From: Macrostomum lignano
Taxonomy: Eukaryota
NCBI GenBank assembly: GCA_002269645.1
Contig: NIVC01000778.1
Span: 124,001 to 188,000, forward strand
Direction: 5' to 3'
Length of the DNA: 64,000 nt
The number at the start of each line of letters is the position of its first letter. Within the stretch, counting starts at the first letter, position 1. Positions 5,561 to 40,377 of the stretch are shown piece after piece. The notes beneath the pieces are model-generated. The model was given only the letters and a program-made list of their open reading frames with translations, was not told the DNA's origin and ran no database searches. The position numbers and the translations under genes are program-made.

Positions 5561-5567
5561 TTTCAAA

Positions 5568-6953: not shown

Positions 6954-8099
6954 ACTGTTATCTACTAATTATATTAATAATCTGTATTAGCATGCTATAT
7001 TCTCATTCTCGACTAGGTGTGGTTATCCAAAGTGATGCAAGTAAATACTGCAAATAATGATTTTTCAAACCTTTGGTTGCAAAAAGACTTCTAGAATGTG
7101 CTTGACCAATCAGATACTCAGTATCTGAATATTAATTTAATTAGATAAACAAAACAGCATATAGAGATAACCCAATTTTAAGCTTGCAATATAGATAAAA
7201 GCGTTTTAAGTATATAAATATTTTAAATATAGCTATAATTTTGCTCTTGCAATGGAATGCAGTTGCAGGATCTAAGCTGGGGCTAAGAGCCAATAAATGA
7301 GCCTTGGCTTTAAAAATACATTAAAATGCTTCTCTTTAACTTACTACTGAACTGACAGTAGCTTACACGCAAATGTGCTGAGTGGCGCATCTAGTTAATC
7401 TAATATCTGTGCTTGAAACTAAAAGTAGTCATTTATAGCGATAGCGGCACGATTATATTGATGGAATGAATTAACAAGGACCAGCCCTAGCAGCCAAGAC
7501 CTTGGTGCCCGTCCGCTCCGCTTGGAGGCGAACGTATGACCATAGGGGGCAATGACCGTAGGCTGCCTATGACCGGGCAATGACCTGACGAACCTCCAGC
7601 ACCAGACTGTCCCGCCCACATGATTGATAGCTTTGGTAGCGCTTTCGTGACCAGAGGGCCAAGGACCCACATGGACCCTACCTGTAGCCAAGGTGCAATA
7701 GTTGGTCACTTCACTCGCTCATAGCATGACCGAGTGGCTGCCACCACTCTATGTGACCTGGCGCACCTGGATCTCACTACCAGACCTCTCTTTGCACGGG
7801 GAGAGGCCATTAGCTTACCCAAACTTCCTTATGCTTTGCCACCCAGGGAGAAAGGCTTAGCAAGCCATGAATGAAATGACGGTGAAAGTGCGAATAATGA
7901 GGATTTTAGTAATGGTTAATAATTAGGCCTTCTAGGCAAAATAAACAGGCAATCAGGCGGCTTCACTATCGAGTAAAATACAGCAAAGATACGGTATCAC
8001 AATTGGCTCAGCTCTCTAATCAAGCAATGGGAAATAAGCAAACCCCGGATAAGTAAAGGCAATTAGAGCACAAATCAGTACAGGAACTTACCGGCAGCT

Positions 8100-8103
<4 letters not shown>

Positions 8104-8163
<60 letters not shown>
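8104..8163. repeat. (AG)n microsatellite
   Basis: About 30 perfect AG units. Confidence 0.98.
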
Positions 8164-8169
<6 letters not shown>

Positions 8170-8314
8170 CGACGGAGTGACCGTGGGCAGCTGTTGGCTG
8201 CAGACAGGCAGGTAGTGAAGCGGCGATGCGCTGAAGCGACAAGGCGCTGATGTAGTTCAGGCGATGCTGAAGGTGCTGGGCGGTATCAGACCGCTGGCCA
8301 ACAGACGAGCTCAC

Positions 8315-10309
8315 TTAGGGATCTGAGGGAACTTGGCGGTATCAGACCGCGGACGGAAATGATTCGTCTTATAGACGAATGGGTCAGATCAATGTCTGAC
8401 AGCAAGTCCAAAGAAGGACGAGAAGAGAGACGAAGACTTTTAAGGGTTGTCAACGCTTCCTTAAATAGCCTTCCCAGCCGCTCCAAGGTCGTTTCCATGA
8501 CTCCCTCTCTCTGATTGGCTGCCGGAGAAATGACGTCAGAATAAGTCATGATGAGAAACATAAGAATGCCATTGCAACATGAGAAATGGGAAAATTGCGC
8601 AATCCGGAGGTGGGGTGGGAGGATAATGAGCACAGCGGAGGGTCGAGAAAGTGTCGCGCAAGCAAACATTGAGAACAATGGGGTTCGGGTCGAGAACAAA
8701 GGAAATGGGAATCGGGGATAATTGGGGAGAACCGAGAACAATAGAAAAGTAAAAATTGGAGAGAAGGACCACTAGGAACACCACTATGAACTGTTCTTAC
8801 ATGCTGAGGGAAGTGTTCTGACATGCTGAGGGAACTGAGGGACTTTTAGCGACGTTTCTATTTTAGACACAGAGTCGCTAAATTCATTAGTGAGTTTTTT
8901 TAGCAATGACTCTTTAGCGATTCTGCTTACGGTAACGTCTCAACAACAGGTTTACCAGTAGGCTGCAACCCCACTGAATTCAATGCAATGATCATTCTAT
9001 TTCAAGCAGATTACAAATTGAATACAAGTGTACCTTTTTACTTAGTATTTTGACACTCTGCTTAATTTAAAGAGTTCTTCTGTATTATCAGTCTCAGTTT
9101 TTGCTATTAATTCCCTAAAAATTCCCAATATAGTTATTGCTATATGTTTGAGTTTCTTATTAAGAGAAACACAGAGATTACTTAGGGAGAAGCTGGTGAA
9201 TGAGCACGCAGATTTTATTGGTTTTGACTATGCGCATTGAAATACAAATAAAGTACCTTTTGCAAGCAGACACAGCTACTGATCTACGTTAGGAAAAGAG
9301 CTCAAGTACATTTACATACGCTCGTACTTGTTAGCTTGAAATTTGAGTTCAACTGAAAAGAGCGATTGGCTGAGCTACAAAATATCACATTTAATAAGAA
9401 TAATGCCACTGCTTGGAACCTATTCCCTATAGCTACAGGCAAGAAACTGAAATGCTGGCTGGCTTACAAAATGCATCATGCTTAAAAGCACATGCCTACA
9501 GTATGAAATGAATCCTACAGTAATCACACACTGAGCTAAATTCCATTGAAAATGTTTGCTGGCTTACAAAATGCATCATGCTTAAAAGCACATGCCTACA
9601 GTATGAAAATGAATCCTACAGTAATCATACACTGAGCTAAATTCCAATGCATCATGCTTAAAAGCACATGCCTACAGTATGAAAATGAATCCTACAGTAA
9701 TCATACACTGAGCTAAATTCCATTGAAAATGTTTGCTAGAAAATCAAAGAGCCGAGACGCTGTCAGTTCGGTTTGGGTCACCTGCCGGATTCTGTGCAGC
9801 ACCGGACCGCTCCATCGAACCTCGGAGCAGCTGTGTCAGTTGTCTGAAATTTGTCATGAAGGATAACTGGATGTTTACAGTCAGTTGAGGAATAGGTGCA
9901 GACATCAAGGGAATGCGGAGTGCATATCTGCACACAGGTTGGGGAATTGTAGACAGCTGGGGAATTGTAGACAGCTGGGGAATTGTAGACAGCTGGGGAA
10001 TTGTAGACAGCTGGGGAATTGTAGATAGCCAGGGAATTGTAGATAGCCAGGGAATTGTAGACAGCTGAGCAATATTTATTTATTTTGATTTTGATTTTTT
10101 ATTCACTTAAGCTTACAGTTTCCTTAAAATCTTAAACGATCCCTCCAAATCTCTCCGAATCTTGGACTCTGACAGATCTCGCTTTAGTTTTTCCTGCATA
10201 TCAACGGACAAACAAAAACTTGCATAGAATCCGTAGATTTGTTCAGAATTCAGCAATACTCGGCAGTACAAGCCTTTCCAAATTGACCTTTTTTTCTGTA
10301 TTGAACTTA
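8315..10309 (-). CDS. Candidate downstream exons of the WSC gene: 10309-10117, 9843-9782, 8518-8315
   Basis: AG/GT-bounded open segments whose phases chain (1-2, 2-1, 1-1) after the last WSC exon: VSSIQKKRSIWKGLYC...EKLKRDLSESKIRRDLEGSFKILRKL / QLTQLLRGSMERSGAAQNPA / ANQREGVMETTLERLGRLFKEAL...PPSSLRSL. No homology recognised. Confidence 0.3.
9458..9740. repeat. ~100-bp tandem triplication
   Basis: Three copies of ATGCATCATGCTTAAAAGCACATGCCTACAGTATGAAA(A)TGAATCCTACAGTAATCA(C/T)ACACTGAGCTAAATTCC. Confidence 0.85.
9940..10066. repeat. 18-bp minisatellite GCTGGGGAATTGTAGACA
   Basis: About 7 copies; same monomer as the 15.5-16.4 kb and 18-37.6 kb arrays. Confidence 0.9.
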
Positions 10310-10432
10310 CTGTCAGGTTATTTCAGACTGTTACGTGAATTGCAAACGGCTTTTAACGGAAAAGAATCAAATTGGATTGCATTCAAGTCAGCACCAGATC
10401 ATGCACAGGCGGTGATGTGACCGAACACTTGC

Positions 10433-10738
10433 CTGATTTATGAGGAGTATTCGTGGTTTCCAGCTTAAAATACACAATTCCCGTACCGCTACCGCATATT
10501 TGCTTGAAATTTCGTGGACATCGAAATGAACAATGTTCGTTGACGGGAATCTTTTCGCTCGCCGGAGGTAGTTCCGATTCGCAAAAGCAGCGGTCACCGT
10601 TAGCGATGGCGAAATATTTGAATCTGCCGTAGAGATCACGCTTCACACACTCGGTAGCGCAAATGAGGTGTGACATCTCATTCGATGTGAGTCTTACTAT
10701 TCCCTTACCATCATATTGGTAGCATTGAGTTGGAGAAT
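10433..10738 (-). CDS. WSC domain exon W1 (306 nt)
   Basis: TTTTAG|AT...CAG|GCAAGT. DSPTQCYQYDGKGIVRLTSNEMSHLICATECVKRDLYGRFKYFAIANGDRCFCESELPP...CSFRCPRNFKQICGSGTGIVYF fits the WSC 8-Cys pattern. Confidence 0.9.
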
Positions 10739-13700
10739 CTAAAACAGTTGAAATCAAAAGCATGGCAGGTAAAAACAAGTGCACAAGCAAGTGTTTGTGG
10801 TTTATAAAAAAATGCAGAAATATTAAACTGCAGAAGATGAATCAGAATAGACTCAAATAGTAAACTCACTAGGAATAGCTGGATAGATCTTCGCTCCCTG
10901 CTTCTTTTCATCTGAAAAGGTGACATTATGGGTGAACTCAGTAGAGAACACTTTAAATCAGCTCGATCAGATTTTCAAGTCAGGTGGAAATGAAACCAGG
11001 GAGAAAAGCTGGATGCTCTTAGCAGTTCTGACTAAGACTAAACATCCTCATTGTATAGTAACTGTAGACAGCTGGGGCAGTTTTATACTGCTGGGTGAAT
11101 ATCAGATAGCTGGGCAAATATCTTAGGAGAGCTGGGTGAATCGATGGCTCAGAGGGCATTGTAGATGCTTGAGAGAATTTTAGGCAGGTGAGCATGCGGT
11201 GAATTGGGGCTGATCGATTGAGAATTGGCAAACGGCTTAACGGAAAAGAATCAAATTGGTTTGTTTGTATATAAGTCAGCACCAGATCATGCACAGGCGG
11301 TGATGTGACCGAACACTTGCCTGATTCCGGAGGAGTATTCGTGATTTCCAGTTTAAAATACACAATTCCCAAGGGACTACCGCATGACTGCTTGTCATTT
11401 TGCTGACATCGATATGAACATGTTTCGTTGAGTTGTGCCTTATTGGTCACCGGAGGTAGTTCCGATTCGCAAAAGCAGCGGTCACCGTTAGCGATGGCGA
11501 AATATTTGAATCTGCCGTAGAGATCACGCTTCACACACTCGGTAGCGCAAATGAGGTGTGACATCTCATTCGATGTGAGTCTTACTTTTCCCGTACCATC
11601 ATAATAACGGTAGCATTGAATTGGAGAATCTAGAAAGTTGAAATCAAATGCATTGCAGGTAAAAACAAGTGCACAAGCAAGTGTTTGTGGTTGATAAAAA
11701 CATGCAGAAATATTAAACTGCAGAAGATGAATCAGAATAGACTCAAATAGTAAACTCACTAGGAATAGCTGGATAGATCTTCGCTCCCTGCTTCTTTTCA
11801 TCTGAAAAGGTGACATTATGGGTGAACTCAGTAGAGAACACTTTAAATCAGCTCGATCAGATTTTCAAGTCAGGTGGAAATGAAACCAGGTAGAAAAGCT
11901 GGATGCTCTTAGCAGTTCTGACTAAGACTAAACATCCTCATTGTATAGTAACTGTAGACAGCTGGGGCAACTTTATACTGCTGGGTGAATATCAGATAGC
12001 TGGGCAAATATCTTAGGAGAGCTGGGTGAATCGATGGCTCAGAGGGCATTGTAGATGCTTGGGAGAATTTCCACCAGAAATCATGAGCATGTGGCGAATC
12101 GGGGCTGATCGATTAAGAATTGGCAAACGGCTTAACGGAAAAGAATCAAATTGGTTTGTTTGTATATAAGTCAGCACCAGATCATGCACAGGCGGTGATG
12201 TGACCGAACACTTGCCTGATTCCGGAGGAGTATTCGTGGTTTCCAGTTTAAAATACACAATTCCCTCAGGACCACCGCATGACTGCTTGTCATTTCGCGG
12301 ACATCGATATGAACAAGTTTCGTTGAGTTCTTTTTTATACTTTGCCGGAGGTAGTTCCGATTCGCAAAAGCAGCGGTCACCGTTAGCGATGGCGAAATAT
12401 TTGAATCCGAAGTAGAGATCACGCCTGACACACTCGGTAGCGCAAACAAGGTGCGACATATTATCAGATTTTAGTTTTGGTCCAGATAAATATTCAACGT
12501 AAAGGTAACATGCAAATGGGGAATCTAAAACAGTTGAAATCAAAAGCATGGCAGGTAAAAACAAGTGCACAAGCAAGTGTTTGTGGTTGATAAAAACATG
12601 CAGAAATATTAAACTGCAGAAGATGAATCAGAATAGACGGAAATAGTAAACTCACTAGGAATAGCTGGATAGACCTTCGCTCCTTGCTTCTTTTTGTCTG
12701 AAAAGGTGACGTCATGGGTGAACTCAGTAGAAAACATTATACAACAGCTCGATCGGATTTTCAAGTCAGATGGAAGTGAAACCAGGGAGAAAAGCTGGAT
12801 GCTCTTAGCTGAGATCAAAACTTCCTCATTGCTAAGTAACTGTAGACAGCTGGGGCGATTATATACTGCTGGGTGAATATCAGATAGCTGTGAGAACTGT
12901 AAGAGAGCTGGGTGAATCGATGGCTGAGGGCATTGTAGATGTTTGGGAGAATTTTAGGCAGGTGAGCATACGGTGAATTGGGGCTGATCGATTGAGAATT
13001 AGCGAATGGGCAAACGGCTTTTAACGGAAAAGAATCAAATTGGTTTGAATTCAAGTCAGCATCAGCTCATGCACAGGCGGTGACGTGACCGAACACTTGC
13101 CTGATTCCGGAGGAGTATTCGTGATTTCCAGTTTAAAATACACAATTCCCCCGGGACCACCGCATGACTGCTTGTCATTTCGCGGACATCGATATGAACA
13201 TTTTTCGTTTTTGTTTTTTGTTTTATACTCCGCTGGAGGTAGTTCCGATTCGCAAAAGCAGCGGTCACCGTTAGCGATGGCGAAATATTTGAATTTTTTC
13301 CCGTAGAGATCACGCCTCACACACTCGGAGGCGCAAACAAGGTGCGACATCTCATCATCGCTTTGCAACACCTTTGTCAATTCATAAGGATTTTCGTAGC
13401 ATTTCAGAGAATCTGAAGCTAAAAATGAAAATGAATAACAAGTGAGCACAAGTGCATGCGGATGAGATCCGCATAAGATTATAATAGTTAATTGTAATGA
13501 GACAGATTATGCGACTGACAAGCTTCAAGTTTAACTCACCTGGAATAACCGGATAGACCTTCGCTCCCTGCTCGAATTTATCTGAAATCGTAAGGTAAAT
13601 TGCAAGAAGATCAAGAATTGGCAAGTGACCTTCAACAGTCTCAGTTTCCAATCGAATTTGCTAACAGCTTACCAATGTTCGGCGAGTTGGTTATTGTGCT

Positions 13701-16700
13701 CAGGCTGAAATACGCCGCTCCACTTTCTCCACCGCACGACTCCATGTGACTTGCTGGGCAGCGGATCGAACAATCTTTCTCGATACTCAGCCTGTACGAG
13801 TCGTGGGGCAGTTCCGATGCACACAGGCAGCTGTCACCGAAGGCGAGGCTGAAGTATTTGAATTTCTTCAAGGCATTTTTCTTGCGACACTCGAAAGCGC
13901 AAACGCGGTGCGACATTTTTTCTTTATTTATTAGTTCCAGCTTTGCCATCGGATAGCCTTGGTATATTGAATAGCATCCTATGGGATCTCCTGCAACCGT
14001 TGGGGAAAAGTGGTCAAATGTTGCATGAAAAGCATTACATCAATATAGGAGCTTTTCTGACATGCTGAGGGAATTGTTCTGACATACTGAGGGAATTGAT
14101 CTGGTATGCTGGGGGAATTATTCTGGCATGCTGAGGGAATTGTTCTGGCATGCTGAGGGAACTGTTCTGACATGCTAAGGGAACTGTTCTGACATGCTAA
14201 GGGAACTGTTCTGACATGCTGGGGGAATTATTCTGGCATGCTGAGGGAACTGTTCTGGTATGCTGGGGGAATTAGTCTGGCATGCTGAGGGAACTGTTCT
14301 GACATGCTGGGGGAATTATTCTGACATGCTGAGGGAACTGTTCTGACATGCTGAGGGAACTGTTCTGATATGCTGAGGGAACTGTTCTGACATGCTGAGG
14401 GAACTGTTCTGACATGCTGAGGGAACTGTTCTGACATGCTGAGAGAACTGTTCTGATATGCTGAGGGAACTGTTCTGACATGCTGAGGGAACTGTTCTGA
14501 CATGCTGAGGGAACTGTTCTGACATGCAGTTCTCACTTGGATTTTGTGTGACGCTCTGCGCTCTGGGATCCGGAGTTGCCGGAACCGATTCGGGCTGGCC
14601 TGCGTGGTGCGGACGTTGCAGTGTGGTTATAATTACTTTTACTTTGAGCTGAAGAATATTATTCATAATTAAAACTTTGAATCTGTTCTCTCACTTTGTT
14701 TTTGCTGATCCGGAGTTGGCAGAATCGACTTGGACTGGTCTGAGTGGTGCGGAGGTTGAAGTGAGTTTGTAATTACTCGATACTAGCATGGATACTAGCA
14801 AGTTGAGTACATGCTTTAGAATGTAGGATTAAAAAGGAGCTGCAAATGTTTATCGTAAAAGCCGGAGCTGTCACCGAATACTTGCCTGGTTTTTGTCGAA
14901 TAAGATTGAAAAATGCCAATAAATCTTGATTTCCGCAAAATTCGAGTGATCCTTTTATACGAGGACACCTTCCTTTACAGTCACTGTCCGGATAAATATC
15001 CGAGTATTCTGGAAGCTCGGGTGCACAAACGCATTCTTTATCGTCGCGAATGAAAAAATATTTGTAATTGTCGTAAAGATCGACACTGATACACCTTTGA
15101 GCGCAAGTTTCAAATGGAATCCCTCTTCGAGTAGACACCACATCTGAATTTTCCATCATCATGTTCACAGCGCAGGCTGCCATCGATATGTTTTCTGAAA
15201 TGGTTAAAACTAATTAATTTAAGTAAGAGCAGCTTAAACAGCGGAAATATTCAGATGGAAACTTACCCGGTAAAATTGGAGTGACCCACGGTCCCTGCTC
15301 GTATGTATCTGAATAATATAAAATTTGAGAATATAAAATTTTTCGAGAAAGTTTGATCAAGCTGGGGTGATTTTAAGTGAACCGATACGGTGCTTCTGGC
15401 CAGTGAAATAAATCTAAGAAATGAACTCAAACATTTCGATGACCTTAACTGGATGAGAGTCATTGGAATGCCAGAAAAACTATTTTAGATTTTTATTTGA
15501 ATCGAAACACGCAGCTAACGAATTGTAGACTGCCGGGGAATCGTAGATAGCTGGGGAATTGTACACAGCTGGAGAATTGTAGACAGCGAGGGAATTGTAG
15601 ACTGCCGGGGAATTGTAGACAGCTGGGGAATTGTAGACAGCGAGGGAATTGTAGACAGCTAGGGAATTGTAGACAGCTAGGGAATTGTAGACAGCTAGGG
15701 AATTGTAGACAGCGAGGGAATTGTAGACTGCCGGGGAATCGTAGACAGCTGGAGAATTGTAGACAGCTAGGGAATTGTAGACTGTCGGGGAATCGTAGAC
15801 AGCTGGAGAATTGTAGACAGCTAGGGAATTGTAGACTGCCGGGGAATCGTAGACAGCTGGAGAATTGTAGACAGCTAGGGAATTGTAGACTGTCGGGGAA
15901 TCGTAGACAGCTGGAGAATTGTAGACAGCTAGGGAATTGTAGACTGCCGGGGAATCGTAGACAGCTGGAGAATTGTAGACAGCTAGGGAATTTTAGACAG
16001 CTATAAAAATGTAGACAGCGAGGGAATTGTAGACAGTTGGGGAATTGTAGCTGGGGAATTGACAACTGGGTAATTGTAGATAGCTGGGAATTGTAGATAG
16101 CTGGGTAGTTGTAGACAGCTGGAGAATTGTAGACAGCTAGGGAATTGTAGACTGCCGGGGAATCGTAGACTGCCGGGTAATCGTAGACAGCTGGGGAATT
16201 GTAGACAGCTGGGGAATTGTAGACAGCTATGAAAATGTAGACAGCGAGGGAATTGTAGACAGTTGGGGAATTGTAGCTGGGGAATTGACAGCTGGGTAAT
16301 TGAATATAGCTGGGAATTGTAGACTGCCGGGGAATCGTAGACAGCTGGGGAATTGTAGACAGCGGGAGAATTGTAGACAGCTGTGAAATTGTAGGCAGCT
16401 GTGGAATTGTAGACAGCTGGACATGAAGAGCATCTTTGGAAATTGTAAGCAGCTTGTGAAAAGCAGTTTCCATTCGAAACAGAAGCAGCTTATGCACAAG
16501 GAGTAATATGACAAAATTCTTGCCTTTTTTTGGAGGAACAGTTGTTGTGGTCAGGTTGAAATACGCTATCTTGTGGTCTCCCCCGCATGACTGATTGTGA
16601 TTTCCTGGGCACCGATACGAACAATAGGAATTTTTTGTTTTCTCCGTTAAAGTGGGTAATGTCGATGCACAGAAGCAAGTGTCGAAGTCGGTGATAGCGA

Positions 16701-19700
16701 AATATTTGAATTTTTTCCCGTAGAGATCACGCCTCACACACTCGGAGGCGCAAACAAGGTGCGACATCTCATTACTTTGCAACACCTTTGTCAAGTCATG
16801 TTGGTTATCGTAGCATTCCGGAAAAACTGAAGCTGAAAATGAAAATAAATAACGGTTGAGCACAAGTCCATGTGTATGAATAAGGTACAGTTGCGGGTAT
16901 ACTAAAATTATAATTATTTATGTGATGAGGCAGAAGACTAACGACCACCCAGAGACCGATGATAAACACAAGACGCTTGACTACAAAGAACTGAATGAGA
17001 TGCACGAGAGACAGAGCCGCTTGGATGGTGGAAAGATGACAATCAATGTAAGCAGACACAAAAACCCTTAAACATAGAATTTGACTGAAAGAATTCAGTA
17101 GTCACTCACCTGGAATAACCGGATAGACCTTCGCTCCCTGCTCGAATTTATCTGAAATGGTAAATTTGTACTTGGACTTTACTTGAGAACATCACTAATA
17201 TAAGCAGCCTTAGCTCTGTGTCAATCAATCTAATTACCTTTTCTCATAGAAGACAGTGTTGCGCTGACGCTAAAATAGGCTGCTGCATTCTCGCCACCGC
17301 ACGATTGCAGGTGATTTCCTGGGCAGCGATACGAACAATGGACTTCAGGGTTATCGACTATACTTGAGTTCCTAGGCAGTTCCGATGCACACAGGCAGTT
17401 GTCACCATTGGCGAGGCCGAAGTATTTGTATCTCTTTAAGGGACTTTTCCTGGCACACTCAAGAGCGCAAACGCGGTGCGACATTTTAATATTTTGCTTC
17501 ATTTCCAGTTTCACTTCATTATTCACTTTATTCGTTATGAGATAGCAGCCAATACCATTGAAAGATTGGACTGAAAATGTTGGGGACAATTAAACCAAAA
17601 CTGAGCAGGGTTTGATGATAGCGATTTGCATCAGCTACAGGGTACATGCGAGCAATTAAGTATAAGATCTGCTAATGCAAAACTGTCATGACATGGACAA
17701 GGAAATGTTTTGACATGCTGAAGAAAATGCATCTGTTTCAAACTGGGATAATTTATGACATGAAGACAATTGAAATGGTTTGATAGTGTCAGTTTATATA
17801 CCAGCTTAATGACACTAATGAAGCAAGAAATACTGAGGAAACTGTTCTGACATACTGAGGAAACTTTTCTGACACACTGAGCTGATTTTGCAGTCTAAAA
17901 TCAACGCTGCAGCCGGGGTAAGTAAAAAAATTGTAATTCAACTCAAAATCTGACTGGTGTCTCACCTGGATCTTCCGGAGCGCTTTTGCCATTCAAAGTC
18001 TCCTGGCTACTTGGAGCTGCACTTGTCCCAGCTGAAAAGTGGCAGTTATATCTTGAATGCAGCTGAGCATGAGCACAAGCTAAAGTGCAAAGTATTTTGG
18101 AGTGAATGTTTGTACACAATTTGGAAAACGGTAGATAGTTGGGATGATTGTAGACAGTTGGGGAATTGTAGACAGCTGGGGAATTGTAGACACCTGAGGA
18201 ATTGTAGACAGCACAGCAATTAGAAAACAGGTGGGGAATTGTAGACAGAAGGGCAATTAAAGACAGGTAGGAAATTGTAGAGAGCATGGCAATTACAGAC
18301 GCGGCTGGGGAAATTGTAGACAGCTGGAAAATTGTAGACATCAGGCAATAGAATAGAATAGAAGACAGCTGGGGAGTTGTAGACAGCTGGGGAATTGTAG
18401 AGAGCTGGGGAATTGTAGAGAGCTGGAGAAATCGTTGACAGCTGGGGAATTGTAGAGAGCTGGAGAAATCGTAGACAGCTGGGGAATTGTAGAGATCTGG
18501 AGAAATCGTAGACAGCTGGGAAATTGTAGAGAGCTGGAGAAATCGTAGACAGCTGGGGAATTGTAGAGAGCTGGAGAAATCGTAGACAGCTGGGGAATTG
18601 TAGAGATCTGGAGAAATCGTAGACAGCTGGGGAATTGTAGAGAGCTGGGGGAATTGTACACAGCTGGGGAATTGTAGAGAGCTGGAGAAATCGTAGACAG
18701 CTTGGGAATTGTAGAGATCTGGAGAAATCGTAGACAGCTGGGGAATTGTAGAGATCTGGAGAAATCGTAGACAGCTGGGGAATTGTAGAGAGCTGGAGAA
18801 ATCGTAGACAGCTGGGGAATTGTAGAGATCTGGAGAAATCGTAGACAGCTGGGGAATTGTAGAGAGCTGGGGGAATTGTACACAGCTGGGGAATTGTAGA
18901 GAGCTGGAGAAATCGTAGACAGCTTGGGAATTGTAGAGATCTGGAGAAATCGTAGACAGCTGGGGAATTGTAGAGATCTGGAGAAATCGTAGACAGCTGG
19001 GGAATTGTAGAGAGCTGGAGAAATCGTAGACAGCTGGGGAATTGTAGAGATCTGGAGAAATCGTAGACAGCTGGGGAATTGTAGAGAGCTGGAGAAATCG
19101 TAGACAGCTGGGGAATTGTAGAGAGCTGGAGAAATCGTTGACAGCTGGGGAATTGTAGAGAGCTGGAGAAATCGTTGACAGCTGGGGAATTGTAGAGATC
19201 TGGAGAAATCGTAGACAGCTGGGGAATTGTAGAGAGCTGGAGAAATCGTAGACAGCTGGGGAATTGTAGAGATCTGGAGAAATCGTAGACAGCTGGGGAA
19301 TTGTAGAGAGCTGGGGGAATTGTACACAGCTGGGGAAATTTAGACAGCAGGGCATTGTAGACGCAGGAGATGATCCGTATCTCGCTAAAACTACAGGATC
19401 TTTTATGACACAAAGGCAAGATAAGTGATTTGATAATGACAGATCAAAGACCAGGGTGAAGTTACTCTACTGAAGTAAGAAATTTGTAATTCAACTCAAA
19501 ATCTGACTGGTGTCTCACCTGGATCTTCCAAAGTGGTTTTGACTTTCGAAGTGTCCTGGCTAGTCGGAGCTGCATTTGTCCCAGCTGAAAAGTGGCAGTT
19601 ATATCTTGAATGCAGCTGAGCATGAGCACAAGCTAAAGTGCAAAGTATTTTGGAGTGAATGTTTGTACACATATTGGGGAACAGTAGAAAGTTGGGGGGA

Positions 19701-22700
19701 TAGTAGACAGTTGAGGAATTGTAAACAGCTGGTGAATTTTAAACAGCAAGGCAATTAAATACAGATGGGGGATTGTAAACAGCTTTAATAATTGTAGACA
19801 GCTGGGAAACTGTAGAGAGGTGGGGAATTGTAGACAGCTGGGCAATTAAAGACGGCTGGGGAAATGTAGACAGCAGGGCAATTAAAGACGGCTGGGGAAA
19901 TGTAGACAGCAGGGCAATTAAAGACGGCTGGGGAAATGTAGACAGCAAAGCAATTAAAGACAGGTGGGGAATTTTGGACAGCTGGGGAATTTTAGACAGC
20001 TGGGGAATTTTAGACAGCTGGGGAATTGCAGACAGCTGGGAAATTGTAGAGAGGTGGGGAATTGTAGACAGCTGGGCAATTAAAGACGGCTGGGGAAATG
20101 TAGACAGCAGGGCAATTAAAGACGGCTGGGGAAATGTAGACAGCAGGGCAATTAAAGACGGCTGGGGAAATGTAGACAGCAGGGCAATTAAAGACGGCTG
20201 GGGAAATGTAGACAGCAGGGCAATTAAAGACGGCTGGGGAAATGTAGACAGCAGGGCAATTAAAGACGGCTGGGGAAATGTAGACAGCAGGGCAATTAAA
20301 GACAGGTGGGGAATTTTAGACAGCTGGGGAATTTTAGACAGCTGGGGAATTTTAGACAGCTTGGGAATTTTAGACAGCTGGGGAATTGCAGACAGCTGGG
20401 AAATTGTAGACAGGATGGCAATTAAAGACAGCTGGGAAATTGTAGACAGCTGGGGAATTTTAGACAGCTGGGGAATTGTAGACAGGATGGCAATTAAAGA
20501 CAGCTGGGAAATTGTAGACAGCTGGGGAATTTTAGACAGCTGGGGAATTGCAGACAGCTGGGAAATTGTAGACAGGATGGCAATTAAAGACAGCTGGGAA
20601 ATTGTAGACAGCAGGTCAATTAAAGACAGCTGGAAAATTGTAGACAGCAGGGCAATTAAAGACAGCTGGGAAATTGTAGACAGCTGGGGAATTGCAGACA
20701 GCTGGGAAGTTGTAGACAGGATGGCAATTAAAGACAGGTGGGAAATTGTAGACAGCTAGGGAATTTTAGACAGGTGGGAAATTGTAGACAGCAGGTCAAT
20801 TAAAGACAGCTGGGGAATTGTACACAGCTGGGGAATTGTAGAGAGTTAGAGAAATCGTAGACAGCTAGAGAATTGTAGAGAGCTGGGGAATCGTAGACAG
20901 GTGGGGAATTGTAAACAGCTGGAAAATTGTAGACAGAAGAGCAATTAAAAACAGGTGGGGAATTGTAGACAGAAGGGCAATTAAAGACAGCAAAGAAATT
21001 GTAGACAGCAGGCAATAGAAGACAGCTGGGGAATTGTAGACAGCTGGAAAATTGTAGACAGCTAGGGAATTGTAGACAGGTGGGAAATTGTAGACAGCAG
21101 GTCAATTAAAGACAGGTAGGAAATTGTAGAGAGCATGGCAATTAAAGACGCGGCTGGGGAAATTGTAGACAGCAGAGTAATTAAAGGCAGGTAGGAAATT
21201 GTAGAGAGCATGGCAATTAAAGACGCGGCTGGGGATATTGTAGACAGCAGAGTAATTAAAGACAGCGGGGCATTTGAAGACAGCTGGGAAATTGTAGACA
21301 GCTGGGGAGTTGTAGACAGCTGGGGAATTGTAGAGAGCTGGAGAAATCGTTGACAGCTGGGGAATTGTAGAGATCTGGAGAAATCGTAGACAGCTGGGGA
21401 ATTGTAGAGAGCTGGGGGAATTGTAGAGAGCTGGAGAAATCGTAGACAGCTGGGGAATTGTAGAGAGCTGGGGGAATTGTACACAGCTGGGGAAATTTAG
21501 ACAGCAGGGCATTGTAGACGCAGGAGATGATCCGTATCTCGCTAAAACTACAGGATCTTTTATGACACAAAGGCAAGATAAGTGATTTGATAATGACAGA
21601 TCAAAGACCAGGGTGAAGTTACTCTACTGAAGTAAGAAATTTGTAATTCAACTCAAAATCTGACTGGTGTCTCACCTGGATCTTCCAAAGTGGTTTTGAC
21701 TTTCGAAGTCTCCTGGCTAGTCGGAGCTGCATTTGTCCCAGCTGAAAAGTGGCAGTTATATCTTGAATGCAGATTAGCATGAGCACAAACTAAAGTGCAA
21801 AGTATTTTGGAGTGAATGTTTGTACACATATTGGGGAACAGTAGAAAGTTGGAGGGATTGTAGACAGTTGGGGAATTGTAGACAGCTGGTGAATTTTAAA
21901 CAGCAAGGCAATTAAAGACAGATGGGGGATTGTAAACAGCTTTAATAATTGTAGACAGCTGGGAAACTGTAGAGAGGTGGGGAATTGTAGACAGCTGGGC
22001 AATTAAAGACGGCTGGGGAAATGTAGACAGCAGGGCAATTAAAGACGGCTGGGGAAATGTAGACAGCAGGGCAATTAAAGACGGCTGGGGAAATGTAGAC
22101 AGCAGGGCAATTAAAGACGGCTGGGGAAATGTAGACAGCAGGGCAATTAAAGACGGCTGGGGAAATGTAGACAGCAGGGCAATTAAAGACGGCTGGGGAA
22201 ATGTAGACAGCAGGGCAATTAAAGACGGCTGGGGAAATGTAGACAGCAGGGCAATTAAAGACGGCTGGGGAAATGTAGACAGCAGGGCAATTAAAGACAG
22301 GTGGGGAATTTTAGACAGCTGGGGAATTTTAGACAGCTTGGGAATTTTAGACAGCTGGGGAATTGCAGACAGCTGGGAAATTGTAGACAGGATGGCAATT
22401 AAAGACAGCTGGGAAATTGTAGACAGCTGGGGAATTTTAGACAGCTGGGGAATTGTAGACAGGATGGCAATTAAAGACAGCTGGGAAATTGTAGACAGCT
22501 GGGGAATTTTAGACAGCTGGGGAATTGCAGACAGCTGGGAAATTGTAGACAGGATGGCAATTAAAGACAGCTGGGAAATTGTAGACAGCAGGTCAATTAA
22601 AGACAGCTGGAAAATTGTAGACAGCAGGGAAATTAAAGACAGCTGGGAAATTGTAGACAGCTGGGGAATTGCAGACAGCTGGGAAGTTGTAGACAGGATG

Positions 22701-25700
22701 GCAATTAAAGACAGGTGGGAAATTGTAGACAGCAGGTCAATTAAAGACAGCTGGGGACTTGTAGACAGCAGGGCAATTAAAGACAGGTGGGAAATTGTGG
22801 ACAGCTGGAAAATTGTAGACAGCTAGGGAATTGTAGACAGGTGGGAAATTGTAGACAGCAGGTCAATTAAAGACAGCTGGGGAATTGTACACAGCTGGGG
22901 AATTGTAGAGAGTTAGAGAAATCGTAGACAGCTAGAGAATTGTAGAGAGCTGGGGAATCGTAGACAGGTGGGGAATTGTAAACAGCTGGAAAATTGTAGA
23001 CAGAAGAGCAATTAAAAACAGGTGGGGAATTGTAGACAGAAGGGCAATTAAAGACAGCAAAGAAATTGTAGACAGCAGGCAATAGAAGACAGCTGGGGAA
23101 TTGTAGACAGCTGGAAAATTGTAGACAGCTAGGGAATTGTAGACAGGTGGGAAATTGTAGACAGCAGGTCAATTAAAGACAGGTAGGAAATTGTAGAGAG
23201 CATGGCAATTAAAGACGCGGCTGGGGAAATTGTAGACAGCAGAGTAATTAAAGGCAGGTAGGAAATTGTAGAGAGCATGGCAATTAAAGACGCGGCTGGG
23301 GATATTGTAGACAGCAGAGTAATTAAAGACAGCGGGGCATTTGAAGACAGCTGGGAAATTGTAGACAGCTGGGGAGTTGTAGACAGCTGGGGAATTGTAG
23401 AGAGCTGGAGAAATCGTTGACAGCTGGGGAATTGTAGAGATCTGGAGAAATCGTAGACAGCTGGGGAATTGTAGACAGCTGGGGAATTGTAGAGAGCTGG
23501 AGAAATCGTAGACAGCTGGGGAATTGTAGAGAGCTGGAGAAATCGTAGACAGCTGGGGAATTGTAGAGAGCTGGGGGAATTGTACACAGCTGGGGAAATT
23601 TAGACAGCAGGGCATTGTAGACGCAGGAGATGATCCGTATCTCGCTAAAACTACAGGATCTATTATGACACAAAGGCAAGATAAGTGATTTGATAATGAC
23701 AGATCAAAGACCAGGGTGAAGTTACTCTACTGAAGTAAGAAATTTGTAATTCAACTCAAAATCTAACTGGTGTCTCACCTGGATCTTCCAAAGTGGTTTT
23801 GACTTTCGAAGTGTCCTGGCTAGTCGGAGCTGCATTTGTCCCAGCTGAAAAGTGGCAGTTATATCTTGAATGCAGCTGAGCATGAGCACAAGCTAAAGTG
23901 CAAAGTATTTTGGAGTGAATGTTTGTACACATATTGGGGAACAGTAGAAAGTTGGGGGGATTGTAGACAGTTGGGGAATTGTAAACAGCTGGTGAATTTT
24001 AAACAGCAGGCCAGTTTAAGACAAGTGGAGAAATGTAGACAGCAGGGCAATTAAAGACGGCTGGGGAAATGTAGACAGCAGGGCAATTAAAGACGGCTGG
24101 GGAAATGTAGACAGCAGGGCAATTAAAGAGGGCTGGGGAAATGTAGACAGCAGGGCAATTAAAGAGGGCTGGGGAAATGTAGACAGCAGGGCAATTAAAG
24201 ACGGCTGGGGAAATGTAGACAGCAGGGCAATTAAAGACGGCTGGGGAAATGTAGACAGCAGGGCAATTAAAGACGGCTGGGGAAATGTAGACAGCAGGGC
24301 AATTAAAGACAGGTGGGGAATTTTAGACAGCTGGGGAATTTTAGACAGCTTGGGAATTTTAGACAGCTGGGGAATTTTAGACAGCTGGGGAATTGCAGAC
24401 AGCTGGGAAATTGTAGAGAGGTGGGGAATTGTAGACAGCTGGGCAATTAAAGACGGCTGGGGAAATGTAGACAGCAGGGCAATTAAAGACGGCTGGGGAA
24501 ATGTAGACAGCAGGGCAATTAAAGACGGCTGGGGAAATGTAGACAGCAGGGCAATTAAAGACGGCTGGGGAAATGTAGACAGCAGGGCAATTAAAGACGG
24601 CTGGGGAAATGTAGACAGCAGGGCAATTAAAGACGGCTGGGGAAATGTAGACAGCAGGGCAATTAAAGACGGCTGGGGAAATGTAGACAGCAGGGCAATT
24701 AAAGACGGCTGGGGAAATGTAGACAGCAGGGCAATTAAAGACAGGTGGGGAATTTTAGACAGCTGGGGAATTTTAGACAGCTTGGGAATTTTAGACAGCT
24801 GGGGAATTGCAGACAGCTGGGAAATTGTAGACAGGATGGCAATTAAAGACAGCTGGGAAATTGTAGACAGCTGGGGAATTTTAGACAGCTGGGGAATTGT
24901 AGACAGGATGGCAATTAAAGACAGCTGGGAAATTGTAGACAGCTGGGGAATTTTAGACAGCTGGGGAATTGCAGACAGCTGGGAAATTGTAGACAGGATG
25001 GCAATTAAAGACAGCTGGGAAATTGTAGACAGCAGGTCAATTAAAGACAGCTGGAAAATTGTAGACAGCAGGGAAATTAAAGACAGCTGGGAAATTGTAG
25101 ACAGCTGGGGAATTGCAGACAGCTGGGAAGTTGTAGACAGGATGGCAATTAAAGACAGGTGGGAAATTGTAGACAGCAGGTCAATTAAAGACAGCTGGGG
25201 ACTTGTAGACAGCAGGGCAATTAAAGACAGGTGGGAAATTGTGGACAGCTGGAAAATTGTAGACAGCTAGGGAATTGTAGACAGGTGGGAAATTGTAGAC
25301 AGCAGGTCAATTAAAGACAGCTGGGGAATTGTACACAGCTGGGGAATTGTAGAGAGTTAGAGAAATCGTAGACAGCTAGAGAATTGTAGAGAGCTGGGGA
25401 ATCGTAGACAGGTGGGGAATTGTAAACAGCTGGAAAATTGTAGACAGAAGAGCAATTAAAAACAGGTGGGGAATTGTAGACAGAAGGGCAATTAAAGACA
25501 GCAAAGAAATTGTAGACAGCAGGCAATAGAAGACAGCTGGGGAATTGTAGACAGCTGGAAAATTGTAGACAGCTAGGGAATTGTAGACAGGTGGGAAATT
25601 GTAGACAGCAGGTCAATTAAAGACAGGTAGGAAATTGTAGAGAGCATGGCAATTAAAGACGCGGCTGGGGAAATTGTAGACAGCAGAGTAATTAAAGGCA

Positions 25701-28700
25701 GGTAGGAAATTGTAGAGAGCATGGCAATTAAAGACGCGGCTGGGGATATTGTAGACAGCAGAGTAATTAAAGACAGCGGGGCATTTGAAGACAGCTGGGA
25801 AATTGTAGACAGCTGGGGAGTTGTAGACAGCTGGGGAATTGTAGAGAGCTGGAGAAATCGTTGACAGCTGGGGAATTGTAGAGATCTGGAGAAATCGTAG
25901 ACAGCTGGGGAATTGTAGAGAGCTGGGGGAATTGTAGAGAGCTGGAGAAATCGTAGACAGCTGGGGAATTGTAGAGAGCTGGAGAAATCGTAGACAGCTG
26001 GGGAATTGTAGAGAGCTGGGGGAATTGTACACAGCTGGGGAAATTTAGACAGCAGGGCATTGTAGACGCAGGAGATGATCCGTATCTCGCTAAAACTACA
26101 GGATCTATTATGACACAAAGGCAAGATAAGTGATTTGATAATGACAGATCAAAGACCAGGGTGAAGTTACTCTACTGAAGTAAGAAATTTGTAATTCAAC
26201 TCAAAATCTAACTGGTGTCTCACCTGGATCTTCCAAAGTGGTTTTGACTTTCGAAGTGTCCTGGCTAGTCGGAGCTGCATTTGTCCCAGCTGAAAAGTGG
26301 CAGTTATATCTTGAATGCAGCTGAGCATGAGCACAAGCTAAAGTGCAAAGTATTTTGGAGTGAATGTTTGTACACATATTGGGGAACAGTAGAAAGTTGG
26401 GGGGATTGTAGACAGTTGGGGAATTGTAAACAGCTGGTGAATTTTAAACAGCAGGCCAGTTTAAGACAAGTGGAGAAATGTAGACAGCAGGGCAATTAAA
26501 GACGGCTGGGGAAATGTAGACAGCAGGGCAATTAAAGACGGCTGGGGAAATGTAGACAGCAGGGCAATTAAAGAGGGCTGGGGAAATGTAGACAGCAGGG
26601 CAATTAAAGAGGGCTGGGGAAATGTAGACAGCAGGGCAATTAAAGACGGCTGGGGAAATGTAGACAGCAGGGCAATTAAAGACGGCTGGGGAATTTCAGA
26701 CAGCTGGGGAATTTTAGACAGCTGGGGAATTTTAGACAGCTGGGGAATTGCAGACAGCTGGGAAATTGTAGACAGGATGGCAATTAAAGACAGCTGGTAA
26801 ATTGTAGACAGCAGGTCAATTAAAGACAGCTGGGGACTTGTAGACAGCACGGCAATTAAAGACAGCTGGGAAATTGTAGACAGCTGGGGAATTGCAGACA
26901 GCTGGGAAATTGTAGACAGGATGGCAATTAAAGTCAGCTGGGAAATTGTGGACAGCTGGAAAATTGTAGACAGCTGGTCAATTAAAGACAGCTGGGGAAT
27001 TGTAGACAGCTGGGGAGTTGTAGACAGCTGGGGAATTGTAGAGAGTTAGAGAAATCGTAGACAGCTAGAGAATTGTAGAGAGCTGGGGAATCGTAGACAG
27101 GTGGGGAATTGTAAACAGCTGGAAAATTGTAGACAGCAGAGCAATTAAAAACAGGTGGAGAAATGTAGACAGAAGGGCAATTAAAGACAGCAAAGAAATT
27201 GTAGACAGCTGGGGAATTGTAGACAGCTGGAAAATTGTAGACAGCTAGGGAATTTTAGACAGGTGGGAAATTGTAGACAGCTGGAAAATTGTAGACAGCT
27301 AGGGAATTGTAGACAGGTAGGAAATTGTAGAGAGCATGGCAATTAAAGACGCGGTTGGGGAAATTATAGACAGCAGAGTAATTAAAGACAGCAGAGCATT
27401 TGAAGACAGCTGGAAAATTGTAGACAGCTGGGGAGTTGTAGACAGCTGGGGAATTGTAGAGAGCTGGAGAAATCGTTGACAGCTGGGGAATTGTAGAGAT
27501 CTGGAGAAATCGTAGACAGCTGGGGAATTGTAGAGAGCTGGGGGAATTGTAGAGAGCTGGAGAAATTGTAGACAGCTGGGGAATTGTAGAGAGCTGGAGA
27601 AATCGTAGACAGCTGGGGAATTGTAGAGAGCTGGGGGAATTGTACACAGCTGGGGAAATTTAGACAGCAGGGCATTGTAGACGCAGGAGATGATCCGTAT
27701 CTCGCTAAAACTACAGGATCTTTTATGACACAAAGGCAAGATAAGTGATTTGATAATGACAGATCAAAGACCAGGGTGAAGTTACTCTACTGAAGTAAGA
27801 AATTTGTAATTCAACTCAAAATCTAACTGGTTTCTCACCTGGATCTTCCAAAGTGGTTTTGACTTTCGAAGTGTCCTGGCTAGTCGGAGCTGCATTTGTC
27901 CCAGCTGAAAAGTGGCAGTTATATCTTGAATGCAGCTGAGCATGAGCACAAGCTAAAGTGCAAAGTATTTTGGAGTGAATGTTTGTACACAATTTGGGGA
28001 ACAGTAGAAAGTTGGGGGGATTGTAGACAGTTGGGGAATTGTAAACAGCTGGTGAATTTTAAACAGCAAGGCAGTTTAAGACAAGTGGAGAAATGTAGAC
28101 AGCAGGGCAATTAAAGACGGCTGGGGAAATGTAGACAGCAGGGCAATTAAAGACGGCTGGGGAAATGTAGACAGCAGGGCAATTAAAGACGGCTGGGGAA
28201 ATGTAGACAGCAGGGCAATTAAAGACGGCTGGGGAAATGTAGACAGCAGGGCAATTAAAGACGGCTGGGGAAATGTAGACAGCAGGGCAATTAAAGACGG
28301 CTGGGGAAATGTAGACAGCAGGGCAATTAAAGACAGGTGGGGAATTTTAGACAGCTGGGGAATTTTAGACAGCTGGGGAATTTTAGACAGCTTGGGAATT
28401 TTAGACAGCTGGGGAATTGCAGACAGCTGGGAAATTGTAGACAGGATGGCAATTAAAGACAGCTGGGAAATTGTAGACAGCTGGGGAATTTTAGACAGCT
28501 GGGGAATTGTAGACAGGATGGCAATTAAAGACAGCTGGGAAATTGTAGACAGCTGGGGAATTTTAGACAGCTGGGGAATTGCAGACAGCTGGGAAATTGT
28601 AGACAGGATGGCAATTAAAGACAGCTGGGAAATTGTAGACAGCAGGTCAATTAAAGACAGCTGGAAAATTGTAGACAGCAGGGCAATTAAAGACAGCTGG

Positions 28701-39384: not shown

Positions 39385-39992
39385 GTTTGCTTGAAGGAAT
39401 TTTGTTTGCGGAAATTTGCTTGCCGAACTTTGCTTGCAGGAATTTTGCTTGCCGGAATTTTGCTTGCCGAACTTTACTTGCAGGAACTTTGCTTGCCGAA
39501 CTTTGCTTGTCAAACTTTGCTTGAAGGAATTTTGCTTGCCGAACTTTGCTTGCAGGAATTTTGCTTGCAGGAATTTTGCTTGCAGGAATTTTGCTTGCAG
39601 GAATTTTGCTTGCAGGAATTTTGCTTGCCGAACTTTGCTTGCCGAACTTTGCTTGCCGGAATTTCGCTTGCAGGAATTTTGCTTGCAGGACTTTGCTTGC
39701 CGAACTTTGCTTGCAGGAATTTTGCTTGCCGAACTTTGCTTGCAGGAATTTGCTTGCCGAACTTTGCTTGCAGAACTTTGCTTGCAGGAATTTGCTTGCA
39801 GAACTTTGCTTGCCGAACTTTGCTTGCAGGAACTTTGCTTGCCGAACTTTGCTTGCCGAACTTTGCTTGCCGAACTTTGCTTGTCGAACTTTGCTTGCAG
39901 GAACTTTGCTTGCGGAATTTCGCCTGCCGAAGTTTGCTTGCCGAGCTTTGCTTGCCGAAGTTTGCTTGCCGAGCTTTGCTTGCAGGAATTTT
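39385..39992 (+). repeat. 14/15-bp minisatellite TTTGCTTGCCGAAC / TTTTGCTTGCAGGAA
   Basis: About 42 mixed units; the same unit recurs inverted at 40378-40672. Confidence 0.95.
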
Positions 39993-40377
39993 GATGTCTG
40001 CTTCCAAGAAATTCGCAATCACAACTGCAAGGTTTTAACTTGCCGAATTATTTTCTTGTTTGTTTGCGTTGGTATCCTTGGGTAGGAGTCATGATATGTA
40101 GCAGTTCACAGATCGGTGGTACATGTACATTCATCTGCAAAATATCTATTCTGTACATTTCGTTGCCTAGATCATTCGATATGTGCATTGTTCCAATTGT
40201 GTCCAATTTTTGTTGAAAATGTGTATTCCCATTAAAAAACTAAATTTTTCCATTTCTGCATCAGGGCTTTTCAAATCCGACATATCCTCATACAAAATCA
40301 AAACACTATAGGCGACTTCCACGAATCTTAGAAAATTTTAGAAATCTTAGAATCTTAGAACGAGGCTGGAAAACCTC

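Follow-up and report, generated by a model that had tools for sequence, protein, structure and literature searches.

The 64,000-nucleotide stretch of Macrostomum lignano DNA analysed here (the window; from contig NIVC01000778.1 of assembly GCA_002269645.1) carries on its minus strand, between positions 17570 and 10433, an array of eight exons encoding WSC domains, which constitutes the 3' two-thirds of the gene BOX15_Mlig015297g1. The observations below suggest, with a probability of about 70%, that this array was shaped by unequal crossing-over and gene conversion among the symmetric WSC exons of a gene for a secreted multi-WSC protein. A preliminary description of the same DNA had pointed to hypervariable coding patches between nearly identical introns, and had read them as diversifying selection on ligand-contact loops of the kind seen in variable immune or adhesion lectins. 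The patches are real and map to loops, but the contrast between exons and introns is probably due in the main to recombination, and the locus is a long way from the diversified recognition system that had been proposed.

Divergence of exons and introns in the tandem units

Six-frame inspection of the window recovered eight open segments with a WSC-like cysteine pattern, which follow each other on the minus strand in transcript order from W8 to W1 (Table 1). The outer limits of the array, 10433 and 17570, coincide exactly with the ends of exons, confirming the eight symmetric exons described earlier. The placement of W1-W4 in tandem units of ~890 bp holds for W1-W3, which alone occupy complete units (U1-U3, of 888, 895 and 885 bp), but not for W4, which shares with these units just the 3' half of the exon and the downstream intron; the 5' half of W4, the intron upstream of it and its micro-exon belong instead to a unit of the W7 type. 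The reported near-identity of the introns is borne out, with 383 of 391 positions identical between 10739-11130 and 11630-12020, and with the micro-exons m2 and m3 being the same.

Exons are indeed more diverged than introns, significantly so in all three pairs of units: 37/306 exonic against 18/539 intronic differences between U1 and U2 (p=1.7e-6), 68/306 against 47/524 between U1 and U3 (p=2e-7), and 54/309 against 57/523 between U2 and U3 (p=0.008), the exons of W1-W3 being 1.5-4x as diverged as the introns. When intron a, micro-exon, intron b and WSC exon are taken separately, the respective divergences are 3.2%, 0%, 3.8% and 12.1% for U1-U2, 10.9%, 9.5%, 3.1% and 22.2% for U1-U3, and 13.2%, 9.5%, 3.8% and 17.5% for U2-U3. 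The divergence of intron b is 3-4% whichever units are compared; that of intron a is 3.2% between U1 and U2 but 11-13% in comparisons with U3, and these two segments are of discordant age.

The differences among W1-W4 concentrate, as first noted, in four patches, set in a framework (FKYFAIANGDRCFCESELPP) that is invariant in all four exons. In one 60-nt block of this framework the invariance extends to the DNA, with zero differences, silent sites included, across W1-W4, as against a proportion of synonymous differences (pS) of 0.12-0.31 in the rest of the exon. The block appears to be a homogenised framework core.

Mosaic exons and a probable signature of gene conversion

Up to the residues DLYGKKFKYFA, W4 is 93-100% identical to W7, patches 1 and 2 included, while beyond this point it is of the D type, with a framework 100% identical to that of W1-W3. 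A maximum chi-square (max-chi2) test splits the exon 33:7 and then 4:60 (p=6e-16). The entire block W8-m8-W7 is also paralogous to W5-m5-W4, m5 and m8 being the same. W2 resembles W1 in its 5' part (34:2) and W3/W4 in its 3' part (3:21; p=5e-11). By these patterns W4 and W2 are clear recombinants. W1 likewise contains a breakpoint (p=2e-5), and the pattern of informative sites also points to segments with incongruent genealogies.

The history of W1 could be followed further by comparison with the homeologous locus L004 (see below), whose orthologous introns differ from those of the window at 4 of 1475 positions. From ~10675 onward, W1 is ~100% identical to its orthologue W1'' in L004, a likeness that begins in the framework, takes in patches 3 and 4 and continues into the 3' intron. 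Patch 1 is completely different (YQYDGKGIVRLTSNE in W1, YPYDNSIFFLLKSKW in W1''), the upstream micro-exon differs as well, and intron b is 83.5% identical. The 5' end of W1, intron b and m2 are instead 92-100% identical to U2, as against 48-88% to W1''. The tract of identity between U1 and U2, which covers the 5' end of W1 up to and including patch 1, crosses the exon-intron border and ends in the W1 exon, at ~10715-10675, and for this reason the similarity of W1 and W2 represents a recent conversion or duplication tract. Patches 3 and 4 of W1 are old, since W1'' has them too; their origin in a recent burst of change is ruled out by the ~100% likeness of the orthologue in this region. The hallmarks of gene conversion found here comprise supported breakpoints, segments with incongruent histories and paralogues that exceed orthologues in similarity in some segments.

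Symmetric modules flanked by homologous introns would be open to unequal crossing-over, by which units are gained or lost. Long- and short-tract conversion between the exons would repeatedly make introns, micro-exons and the central framework nearly identical again, and would leave behind or import loop segments of older ancestry, namely loop L1 (patch 1) and loop L5 (patches 3 and 4). Mosaicism, and not faster point substitution in the patches, would then generate the appearance of hypervariable patches between conserved introns. The loop differences might persist either through selection against conversions that erase them or through weak constraint on the loops, and selection keeping the differences is possible.

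Substitution patterns in the patches

The principal alternative is that W1-W4 are young tandem duplicates whose contact loops were driven apart by positive selection on point mutations. Consistent with this are the 1.5-4x excess of exon over intron divergence, the location of the changes in the surface loops L1 and L5, and a proportion of non-synonymous differences (pN) that for W1-W2 amounts to 3.8-fold the intron divergence. However, by the Nei-Gojobori method (NG86), applied per whole exon and per patch, pN/pS is 0.69-1.05 for whole exons and 0.82-1.11 for the patches, so that the ratio of non-synonymous to synonymous rates (dN/dS) is not significantly above 1, counter to what the preliminary description had anticipated. 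The silent sites of the exons are themselves 2-4x as diverged as the introns (pS 0.121 against 0.033 for U1-U2, p=0.004; 0.266 against 0.090 for U1-U3, p=8e-5; 0.212 against 0.109 for U2-U3, p=0.027), which would be unexpected if young duplicates had diverged by amino-acid-changing point mutations. A strict silent count, confined to codons with a conserved amino acid, gives 7/26 for W1-W3 against 0.09 in the introns (p=0.009), this being the only pair for which it is significant. Furthermore, patches 3 and 4 of W1, being shared with W1'', would predate the event that made the introns of U1 and U2 alike, the variant patches 1 and 2 of W4 are simply W7-type sequence, and W2 and W4 are recombinant. 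The immune or adhesive setting invoked earlier is likewise without support, the only context from the species being that of prostate-limited seminal-fluid candidates. Point mutation under positive selection is thus an unlikely source of the pattern. As the exons are recombinant, site tests on a single tree would be invalid without recombination partitions.

Several points nevertheless weigh against recombination among the exons as a sufficient account. The strict silent count for W1-W2 is 2/34, which at low power is not significantly above the intron level, and as this count lies near the intron level the NG86 pS of the patches is probably inflated in part by codons hit more than once. In patch 1 of W4 a tri-codon hot spot (13389-13381) encodes PYE, as against RYE in L004, RRK in the other homeologous locus, L003, and QHD in W7; its four steps among PYE, RYE and RRK are all non-synonymous in otherwise ~99% identical sequence, and 4 of the 7 mismatches between W4 and L003 over 305 nt fall within 6 nt of each other (simulated P=3e-4). 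When the window is compared with L004, non-synonymous differences (15/1242) exceed those of the introns (4/1475; p=0.004), with silent differences (4/327) also above the intron level (p=0.04). The tri-codon and the L004 excess could stem from adaptive change, from imported conversion patches or from relaxed constraint; the tri-codon is only suggestive of positive selection, and some of these signals would fit real adaptive change added to conversion. To polarise the individual conversions in direction and time would take an outgroup species. Long-lived divergent haplotypes with homogenised flanks would give a similar picture, the contigs being unassigned to subgenomes. Lastly, the role of the protein as a multivalent secreted glycan binder is a putative one.

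Turnover of the array among homeologous loci

Macrostomum lignano possesses three homeologous subgenomes with ~2% genome-wide difference (PMC10733133). Beside the window, WSC arrays of this gene occur in L003 and L004, L004, the third of the loci, having been found through the 90% cluster of P0001, the product of BOX15_Mlig015297g1; a profile search with 10 domains gave only two further fragments. The window encodes 8 WSC domains, L004 10 and L003 6. The L003 product (P0002, 826 amino acids) has the order A-B-C, linkers, A-B-C, and that of L004 (P0005, 1409 amino acids) the order W8, W7, W6, W5, W4'', X1, X2, X3, Y, W1''. The flanking introns of the window and L004 are 99.7-100% identical, yet their domain numbers differ. 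Orthologous exons of the window and L003 show a pS of 0.05-0.09, as compared with 0.21-0.27 for W3 against W1/W2 and ~0.6 for D-type against B-type exons; the latter two values being the higher, the exon types are likely to predate the split of the window and L003 loci, though the introns appear young.

Each locus contains its own traces of turnover. In L004, X1-X3 lie in 881-bp units whose 572 non-coding nt show 0-1 differences. Three exon nucleotides set X2 apart from X1/X3, of which two adjacent ones produce the HLV state of other paralogous exons, a change that points to short-tract conversion. In L003, the segments 9080-12356 and 13740-15667 form an internal B-m'-C duplication that is 95-98% identical including introns (97.8%), with identical C exons and B exons that differ by 2 non-synonymous changes; this duplication probably overwrote any D-type array there. 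W6 has only 36% amino-acid identity and a pS of 0.53 to the exon C1 at the same position of L003 (11749-12057), and the micro-exon and intron upstream of W6 are 79% identical to L003, which looks like the replacement of an exon by one of a different WSC type. W2 and its positional counterpart Y in L004 have little in common beyond the patch-4 signature.

Further observations pertain to these loci. Between X3 and Y, L004 contains a pair of 66-nt exons belonging to the N-terminal repeat type (AESTAAPTSQETQKGKGASEDP and AGTTTAPATQKDLKGNSASEDS; 23475-23540 and 24276-24341), which would represent intragenic shuffling of linker modules. Where the flanking introns of the window and L004 are 100% identical, exon differences come as adjacent-codon pairs (QSNEMSH in W7, ~16775, against QSIVMSH in L004; CAQRCIS in W6, ~15100, against CARGCIN), and W8, W7, W6 and W5 together show 9 non-synonymous and 1 synonymous differences from L004. 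No donor for the adjacent-codon changes of W7 and W6 was found within the compared loci. From another M. lignano assembly, and compared at the protein level only, P0003 (UniProt A0A1I8JDE2) is a D-type variant with a W1/W2-like patch 1, a W3-like patch 3 and a patch 4 of its own (GGSSE), and P0004 (UniProt A0A1I8J6Z6) is an A-type variant blending P0001 and P0002 states; both hint at further mosaic copies or haplotypes.

These comparisons also bear on whether the array could be an assembly artefact, that is a chimeric consensus of the three ~98%-identical subgenome copies. Redundancy and difficulties of assembly are known for Mlig_3_7, with 93% of read pairs multi-mapping, and the locus is full of minisatellites. 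Against this, every exon of the three contigs retains its open frame, phase and splice sites, the exon types differ at up to 60% of silent sites, far above the divergence of the subgenomes, and the breakpoints lie in intervals of shared sequence, as those of biological crossovers would. In addition, the fragment P0008 from an independent assembly reproduces W4''-X1-X2-X3 of L004 exactly, as does P0007 the W8 segment. An artefact of this kind is therefore most improbable.

Gene structure and splicing

Positions 1-48227 of the window correspond to NIVC01000778.1 (L001) in reverse orientation at 100% identity. P0001 (1130 amino acids) was found by conceptual translation of the window exons, and all WSC exons and micro-exons of the exon model built from the window are identical to it. 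The gene, annotated only as hypothetical, comprises a signal-peptide exon, Thr/Ser/Pro-rich repeat exons of 22-28 residues, eight WSC modules and a terminal 'DN*' exon. The N-terminus of P0001 (MFRTVLLLFCMSAAIYGALSC) is signal-peptide-like as read by eye from the sequence. A Pfam scan of P0001 recovered eight WSC stretches (250.7 bits) and no domain type besides WSC. The gene is thus predicted to encode a secreted protein with eight WSC domains. The GenBank annotation of this assembly was built from genome-guided RNA sequencing (RNA-seq) assemblies with StringTie/TACO (PMC5730564), and the exon joins are consequently transcript-based; that the exons are joined in a transcript, as the preliminary description had supposed, is upheld by the annotated transcript, which takes in all eight.

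Every WSC exon has a length divisible by 3, phase 1-1 and an AG acceptor, and phase 1-1 is common to all module kinds, namely WSC exons, 42-nt linkers, 66-nt N-terminal repeats and linker exons. The 42-nt micro-exons encode 14 residues of the pattern D-x-x-x-Q-G-A-K-V-Y-P-x-I-P, and two linker exons are placed between W6 and W5. At 6/8 WSC exons (types B, C and D) the downstream intron is of the GC-AG class with an AG/GCAAG donor (GC donors at 10432, 11320, 12215, 13100, 14885 and 16523), whereas the A-type WSC exons (W8 and W5) and all micro-exons have GT donors. The AG/GCAAG donors are conserved across the three homeologous loci, and exon types X and Y have them as well.

This architecture allows a further alternative, in which the introns are conserved by purifying selection for the control of splicing of cassette or mutually exclusive WSC exons with weak GC donors, and the exons merely show their older age. 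The equal phase and length of the exons would allow any subset to be skipped in frame, GC donors are over-represented among alternatively spliced exons, those found here are retained in three loci, and the introns of U1 and U2 are 98% identical over 391 nt. However, the annotated transcript holds all eight exons, so the one-exon-per-transcript arrangement of a Dscam-like system does not apply to this RNA-seq-derived model. No docking/selector complementarity was found, an inverted-repeat search of 9800-13700 giving only A/T-rich, low-complexity matches of 76-86%, and no Rfam family reached the gathering score in 9500-18200. Moreover, the similarity is tract-like, with intron a and intron b discordant and the identity tract spanning exon-intron borders to end in an exon, and the framework DNA is identical at silent sites too, a pattern of homogenisation and not of constraint. 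Functional conservation of the introns is accordingly improbable as the cause of the contrast, and unequal crossing-over with gene conversion remains the preferred reading.

Table 1. Modules and related features of BOX15_Mlig015297g1, in window coordinates
Feature	Position	Strand	Basis or remark
Whole coding sequence of BOX15_Mlig015297g1	9836..38227	-	protein and gene span, N-terminal exons mapped
18-bp minisatellite (GAATTGTAGACAGCTGGG), 19 kb, in introns of BOX15_Mlig015297g1	18147..36968	.	
W8, A-type WSC exon, 333 nt, GT donor	17238..17570	-	P0001 residues ~172-282
m8, 42-nt linker micro-exon (DKFEQGAKVYPVIP)	17110..17151	-	sequence same as m5
W7, B-type WSC exon, 309 nt, AG/GCAAG (GC) donor	16524..16832	-	Pfam and splice sites
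m7, 42-nt linker micro-exon (DTYEQGPWVTPILP)	15267..15308	-	sequence and splice sites
W6, C-type WSC exon, 309 nt, GC donor	14886..15194	-	Pfam and splice sites
Linker exon L1 as annotated (DQSKSILPTPDQQKQ)	14695..14739	-	gene model
Linker exon L2 as annotated (SQPESVPATPDPRAQSVTQNP)	14537..14599	-	gene model
W5, A-type WSC exon, 318 nt, GT donor	13673..13990	-	Pfam and splice sites
m5, 42-nt micro-exon, same as m8	13540..13581	-	sequence
W4, chimeric WSC exon, GC donor	13101..13418	-	5' B-type, 3' D-type; max-chi2
Patch-1 tri-codon hot spot	13381..13389	-	W4 CCT TAT GAA (PYE)
W4 crossover interval (TTCAAATATTTCGCCATC)	13276..13293	-	stretch common to both parental exon types
m4, micro-exon (DKKKQGAKVYPAIP)	12656..12697	-	sequence and splice sites
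W3, D-type WSC exon, 309 nt, GC donor	12216..12524	-	Pfam and splice sites
m3, micro-exon (DEKKQGAKIYPAIP), same as m2	11760..11801	-	sequence
W2, D-type WSC exon, mosaic	11321..11629	-	max-chi2
W2 patches P1; P2; P3; P4	11612-11565; 11525-11508; 11456-11421; 11417-11367	-	
m2, micro-exon	10870..10911	-	sequence
W1, last WSC exon, D-type, 306 nt, GC donor	10433..10738	-	orthologue comparison
60-nt block (FKYFAIANGDRCFCESELP)	10564..10623; copies 11452-11511, 12347-12406, 13235-13294	-	DNA alignment
Terminal coding exon (..AC AAC TGA = D N stop)	9836..9843	-	end of gene span

Identity and structure of the WSC domains

All 8 exons score above the gathering threshold of the Pfam WSC family (PF01822), with 29.9-53.3 bits against a cut-off of 27.8 and E-values of 7e-7 to 3e-14, and matches to known WSC domains were also found at the sequence level. 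In an alignment of 10 domains C5, C27, C31, C51, C53, C70, C74, C82 and G83 are invariant, giving the eight cysteines, putatively paired in four disulfides, and the CG[GS] motif expected of the family; the CGG-type motif in loop L5 and the loop nomenclature follow PMC9024836. An AlphaFold2 (AF2) model of W2, of moderate confidence (predicted local distance difference test score, pLDDT, 72.7; predicted template modelling score, pTM, 0.70), has a central beta-sheet packed on one alpha-helix with a long L5 loop around it, and its top Foldseek matches are Kremen1 (5fwt, TM-score 0.69) and Wsc1 (7pz2, TM-score 0.64). Sequence and fold thus agree with the WSC assignment made at the outset.

On this model patch 1 corresponds to L1, patch 2 to the loop from helix to strand, and patches 3 and 4 to the long L5 loop, so that the variable patches are predicted to lie between secondary-structure elements, outside the core and at the surface, as had been expected. 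Their designation as ligand-contact loops is best treated as a hypothesis, because WSC domains have no defined glycan pocket or ligand site (PMC9024836) and because aromatic cluster 3 at L1/L5 of yeast Wsc1 lacks conservation and, when mutated, did not raise the sensitivity to 3/4 cell-wall stress agents. The L1/L5 face of Wsc1 is its least conserved face and is largely dispensable in stress assays.

Minisatellites and other features of the window

The array lies in a eukaryotic setting rich in minisatellites, which are unusually dense over the whole window; their units are 14-53 bp long, and each is repeated tens of times. The 18-bp minisatellite that fills introns of the gene also occurs at 37280-37643, 15520-16420 and 9940-10067, and degenerate copies (CCCAGCTGTCTACAGTTAC) are found inside intron a of D-type units. 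Within or next to it are eight identical 66-nt phase-1/1 exons (AGTNAAPTSQDTSKVKTTLEDP), whose coding stretch GTNAAPTSQDTSKVKTTLED starts at 37188, 33540, 31746, 29877, 27902, 26287, 23842 and 19582; a ninth, diverged one is at 18029, and the splice contexts are identical throughout. Since no more than 3 plus 1 of these exons are included in the annotated mRNA, the real number of N-terminal repeats may be larger or variable.

A 22-bp minisatellite (GGAACTGTTCTGACATGCTGAG) is present at 14048-14527, 8788-8837, 17830-17881 and 37649-37704, with equivalents in L003 at 6360-8540 and 12906-13261, and both the 22-bp and the 18-bp repeats occupy matching relative intron positions across the homeologous loci. 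Such copies may serve as recombination substrates. Further minisatellites lie at 1147-2405, 3744-4460, 5567-6953, 41607-42221, 39397-40672, 48110-48838, 59553-60768, 62083-62639 and 63336-64000; the 28-bp unit of 5567-6953 recurs at 41607-42221, on the other flank of the gene. Elsewhere, a 409-codon open segment on the minus strand (55113-56339), with a Ser/Cys/Asp-rich C-terminal end, gave no Pfam match.

Relationship to known systems and functional implications

The domains are bona fide WSC domains and the evolutionary pattern is already known, the gene itself being in none of the literature searched. With Kremen1, yeast Wsc1 and SiWSC3 (PF01822) these domains share the Cys-rich PAN/Apple-type fold, the eight cysteines and the CG[GS] motif. 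In contrast to these, the M. lignano protein has 8 (10 or 6) domains rather than 1-3, in an animal, and neither a transmembrane nor a catalytic partner domain. SiWSC3 of Serendipita indica is a three-WSC lectin with multivalent beta-1,3-glucan binding (PMC9024836), and, by analogy with its likewise secreted architecture of repeated WSC domains only, multivalent glycan binding might be expected here as well.

A 'peak of divergence' under gene conversion has been described in primate red/green opsins, the major histocompatibility complex (MHC) and tomato Cf-4/9 (PMC3924837), with which the present locus shares introns homogenised by conversion, short diverged exon segments and disagreement between exon and intron genealogies. 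It is distinct from them in that the paralogues are exons within one gene and in that, with pN/pS ~1, selection against conversion is only a possibility.

Among reproductive proteins, the ZP-N repeats of abalone VERL are tandem repeats under concerted evolution (PMC3567151). Both systems are tandem arrays of extracellular domains with rapid turnover between close relatives, and in both certain repeats have been homogenised while others, terminal or particular ones, have diverged. In M. lignano, unlike VERL, each repeat unit consists of two exons together with introns, which makes homogenisation visible in non-coding DNA, and a reproductive role is only a candidate one. By Patthy's rule, exon-shuffled modular extracellular proteins are built of phase 1-1 exons. 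The gene conforms to this rule, L004 even having N-terminal-type exons within its WSC array, and it is not unusual among such proteins, but a textbook example at a very recent time depth.

WSC-type BLAST matches are frequent among 76 prostate-limited transcripts of M. lignano that are seminal-fluid candidates (Weber et al. 2018, PMC5977470 Table S1), and other prostate-limited WSC candidates include RNA815_80.4 (Arbore et al. 2015, PMC4490696) and Mlig-pro46 (PMC6953679). These share with the present protein the species, the domain type and the secreted architecture, but have transcripts of ~0.7-1.4 kb and 1-3 WSC domains; RNA815_80.4, when its sequence was compared, proved to be a different WSC gene. 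In the texts and supplements searched no expression data for Mlig015297, Mlig009330 or Mlig000913 were found. The name 'Mlig015297' occurs in no paper text searched, does not appear in the supplements to PMC5730564 and PMC12896417, and is not in Table S1 of Weber et al., which gives RNA815 IDs only, without sequences. From the species context, the protein could plausibly be a glandular or seminal-fluid product, at somewhat less than even odds.

A bolder reading, which we regard as doubtful, is that the locus constitutes a cassette-shuffling system, in which recombination yields new combinations of L1/L5 loops and domain numbers, and selection retains them. If so, the selection might stem, for instance, from sexual conflict over the interaction of seminal fluid with partner glycans, and the three copies, with 8, 10 and 6 domains, would be distinct glycan-recognition repertoires despite ~100% identical flanks.

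Independently of function, the locus offers a very recent snapshot of the evolution of a modular extracellular protein, in which two gene copies with introns identical at 1471/1475 positions differ by two WSC domains and also display replaced exons and swapped loop segments. Conversion tracts that end in exons can mimic diversifying selection, which calls for caution in genome scans and in the use of dN/dS on repeat arrays. Should the protein be one of the WSC seminal-fluid proteins of M. lignano, the locus would provide a tractable model, in a species amenable to transgenesis and RNA interference, for linking domain shuffling to post-mating sexual selection. It could also help define the ligands of animal WSC domains.

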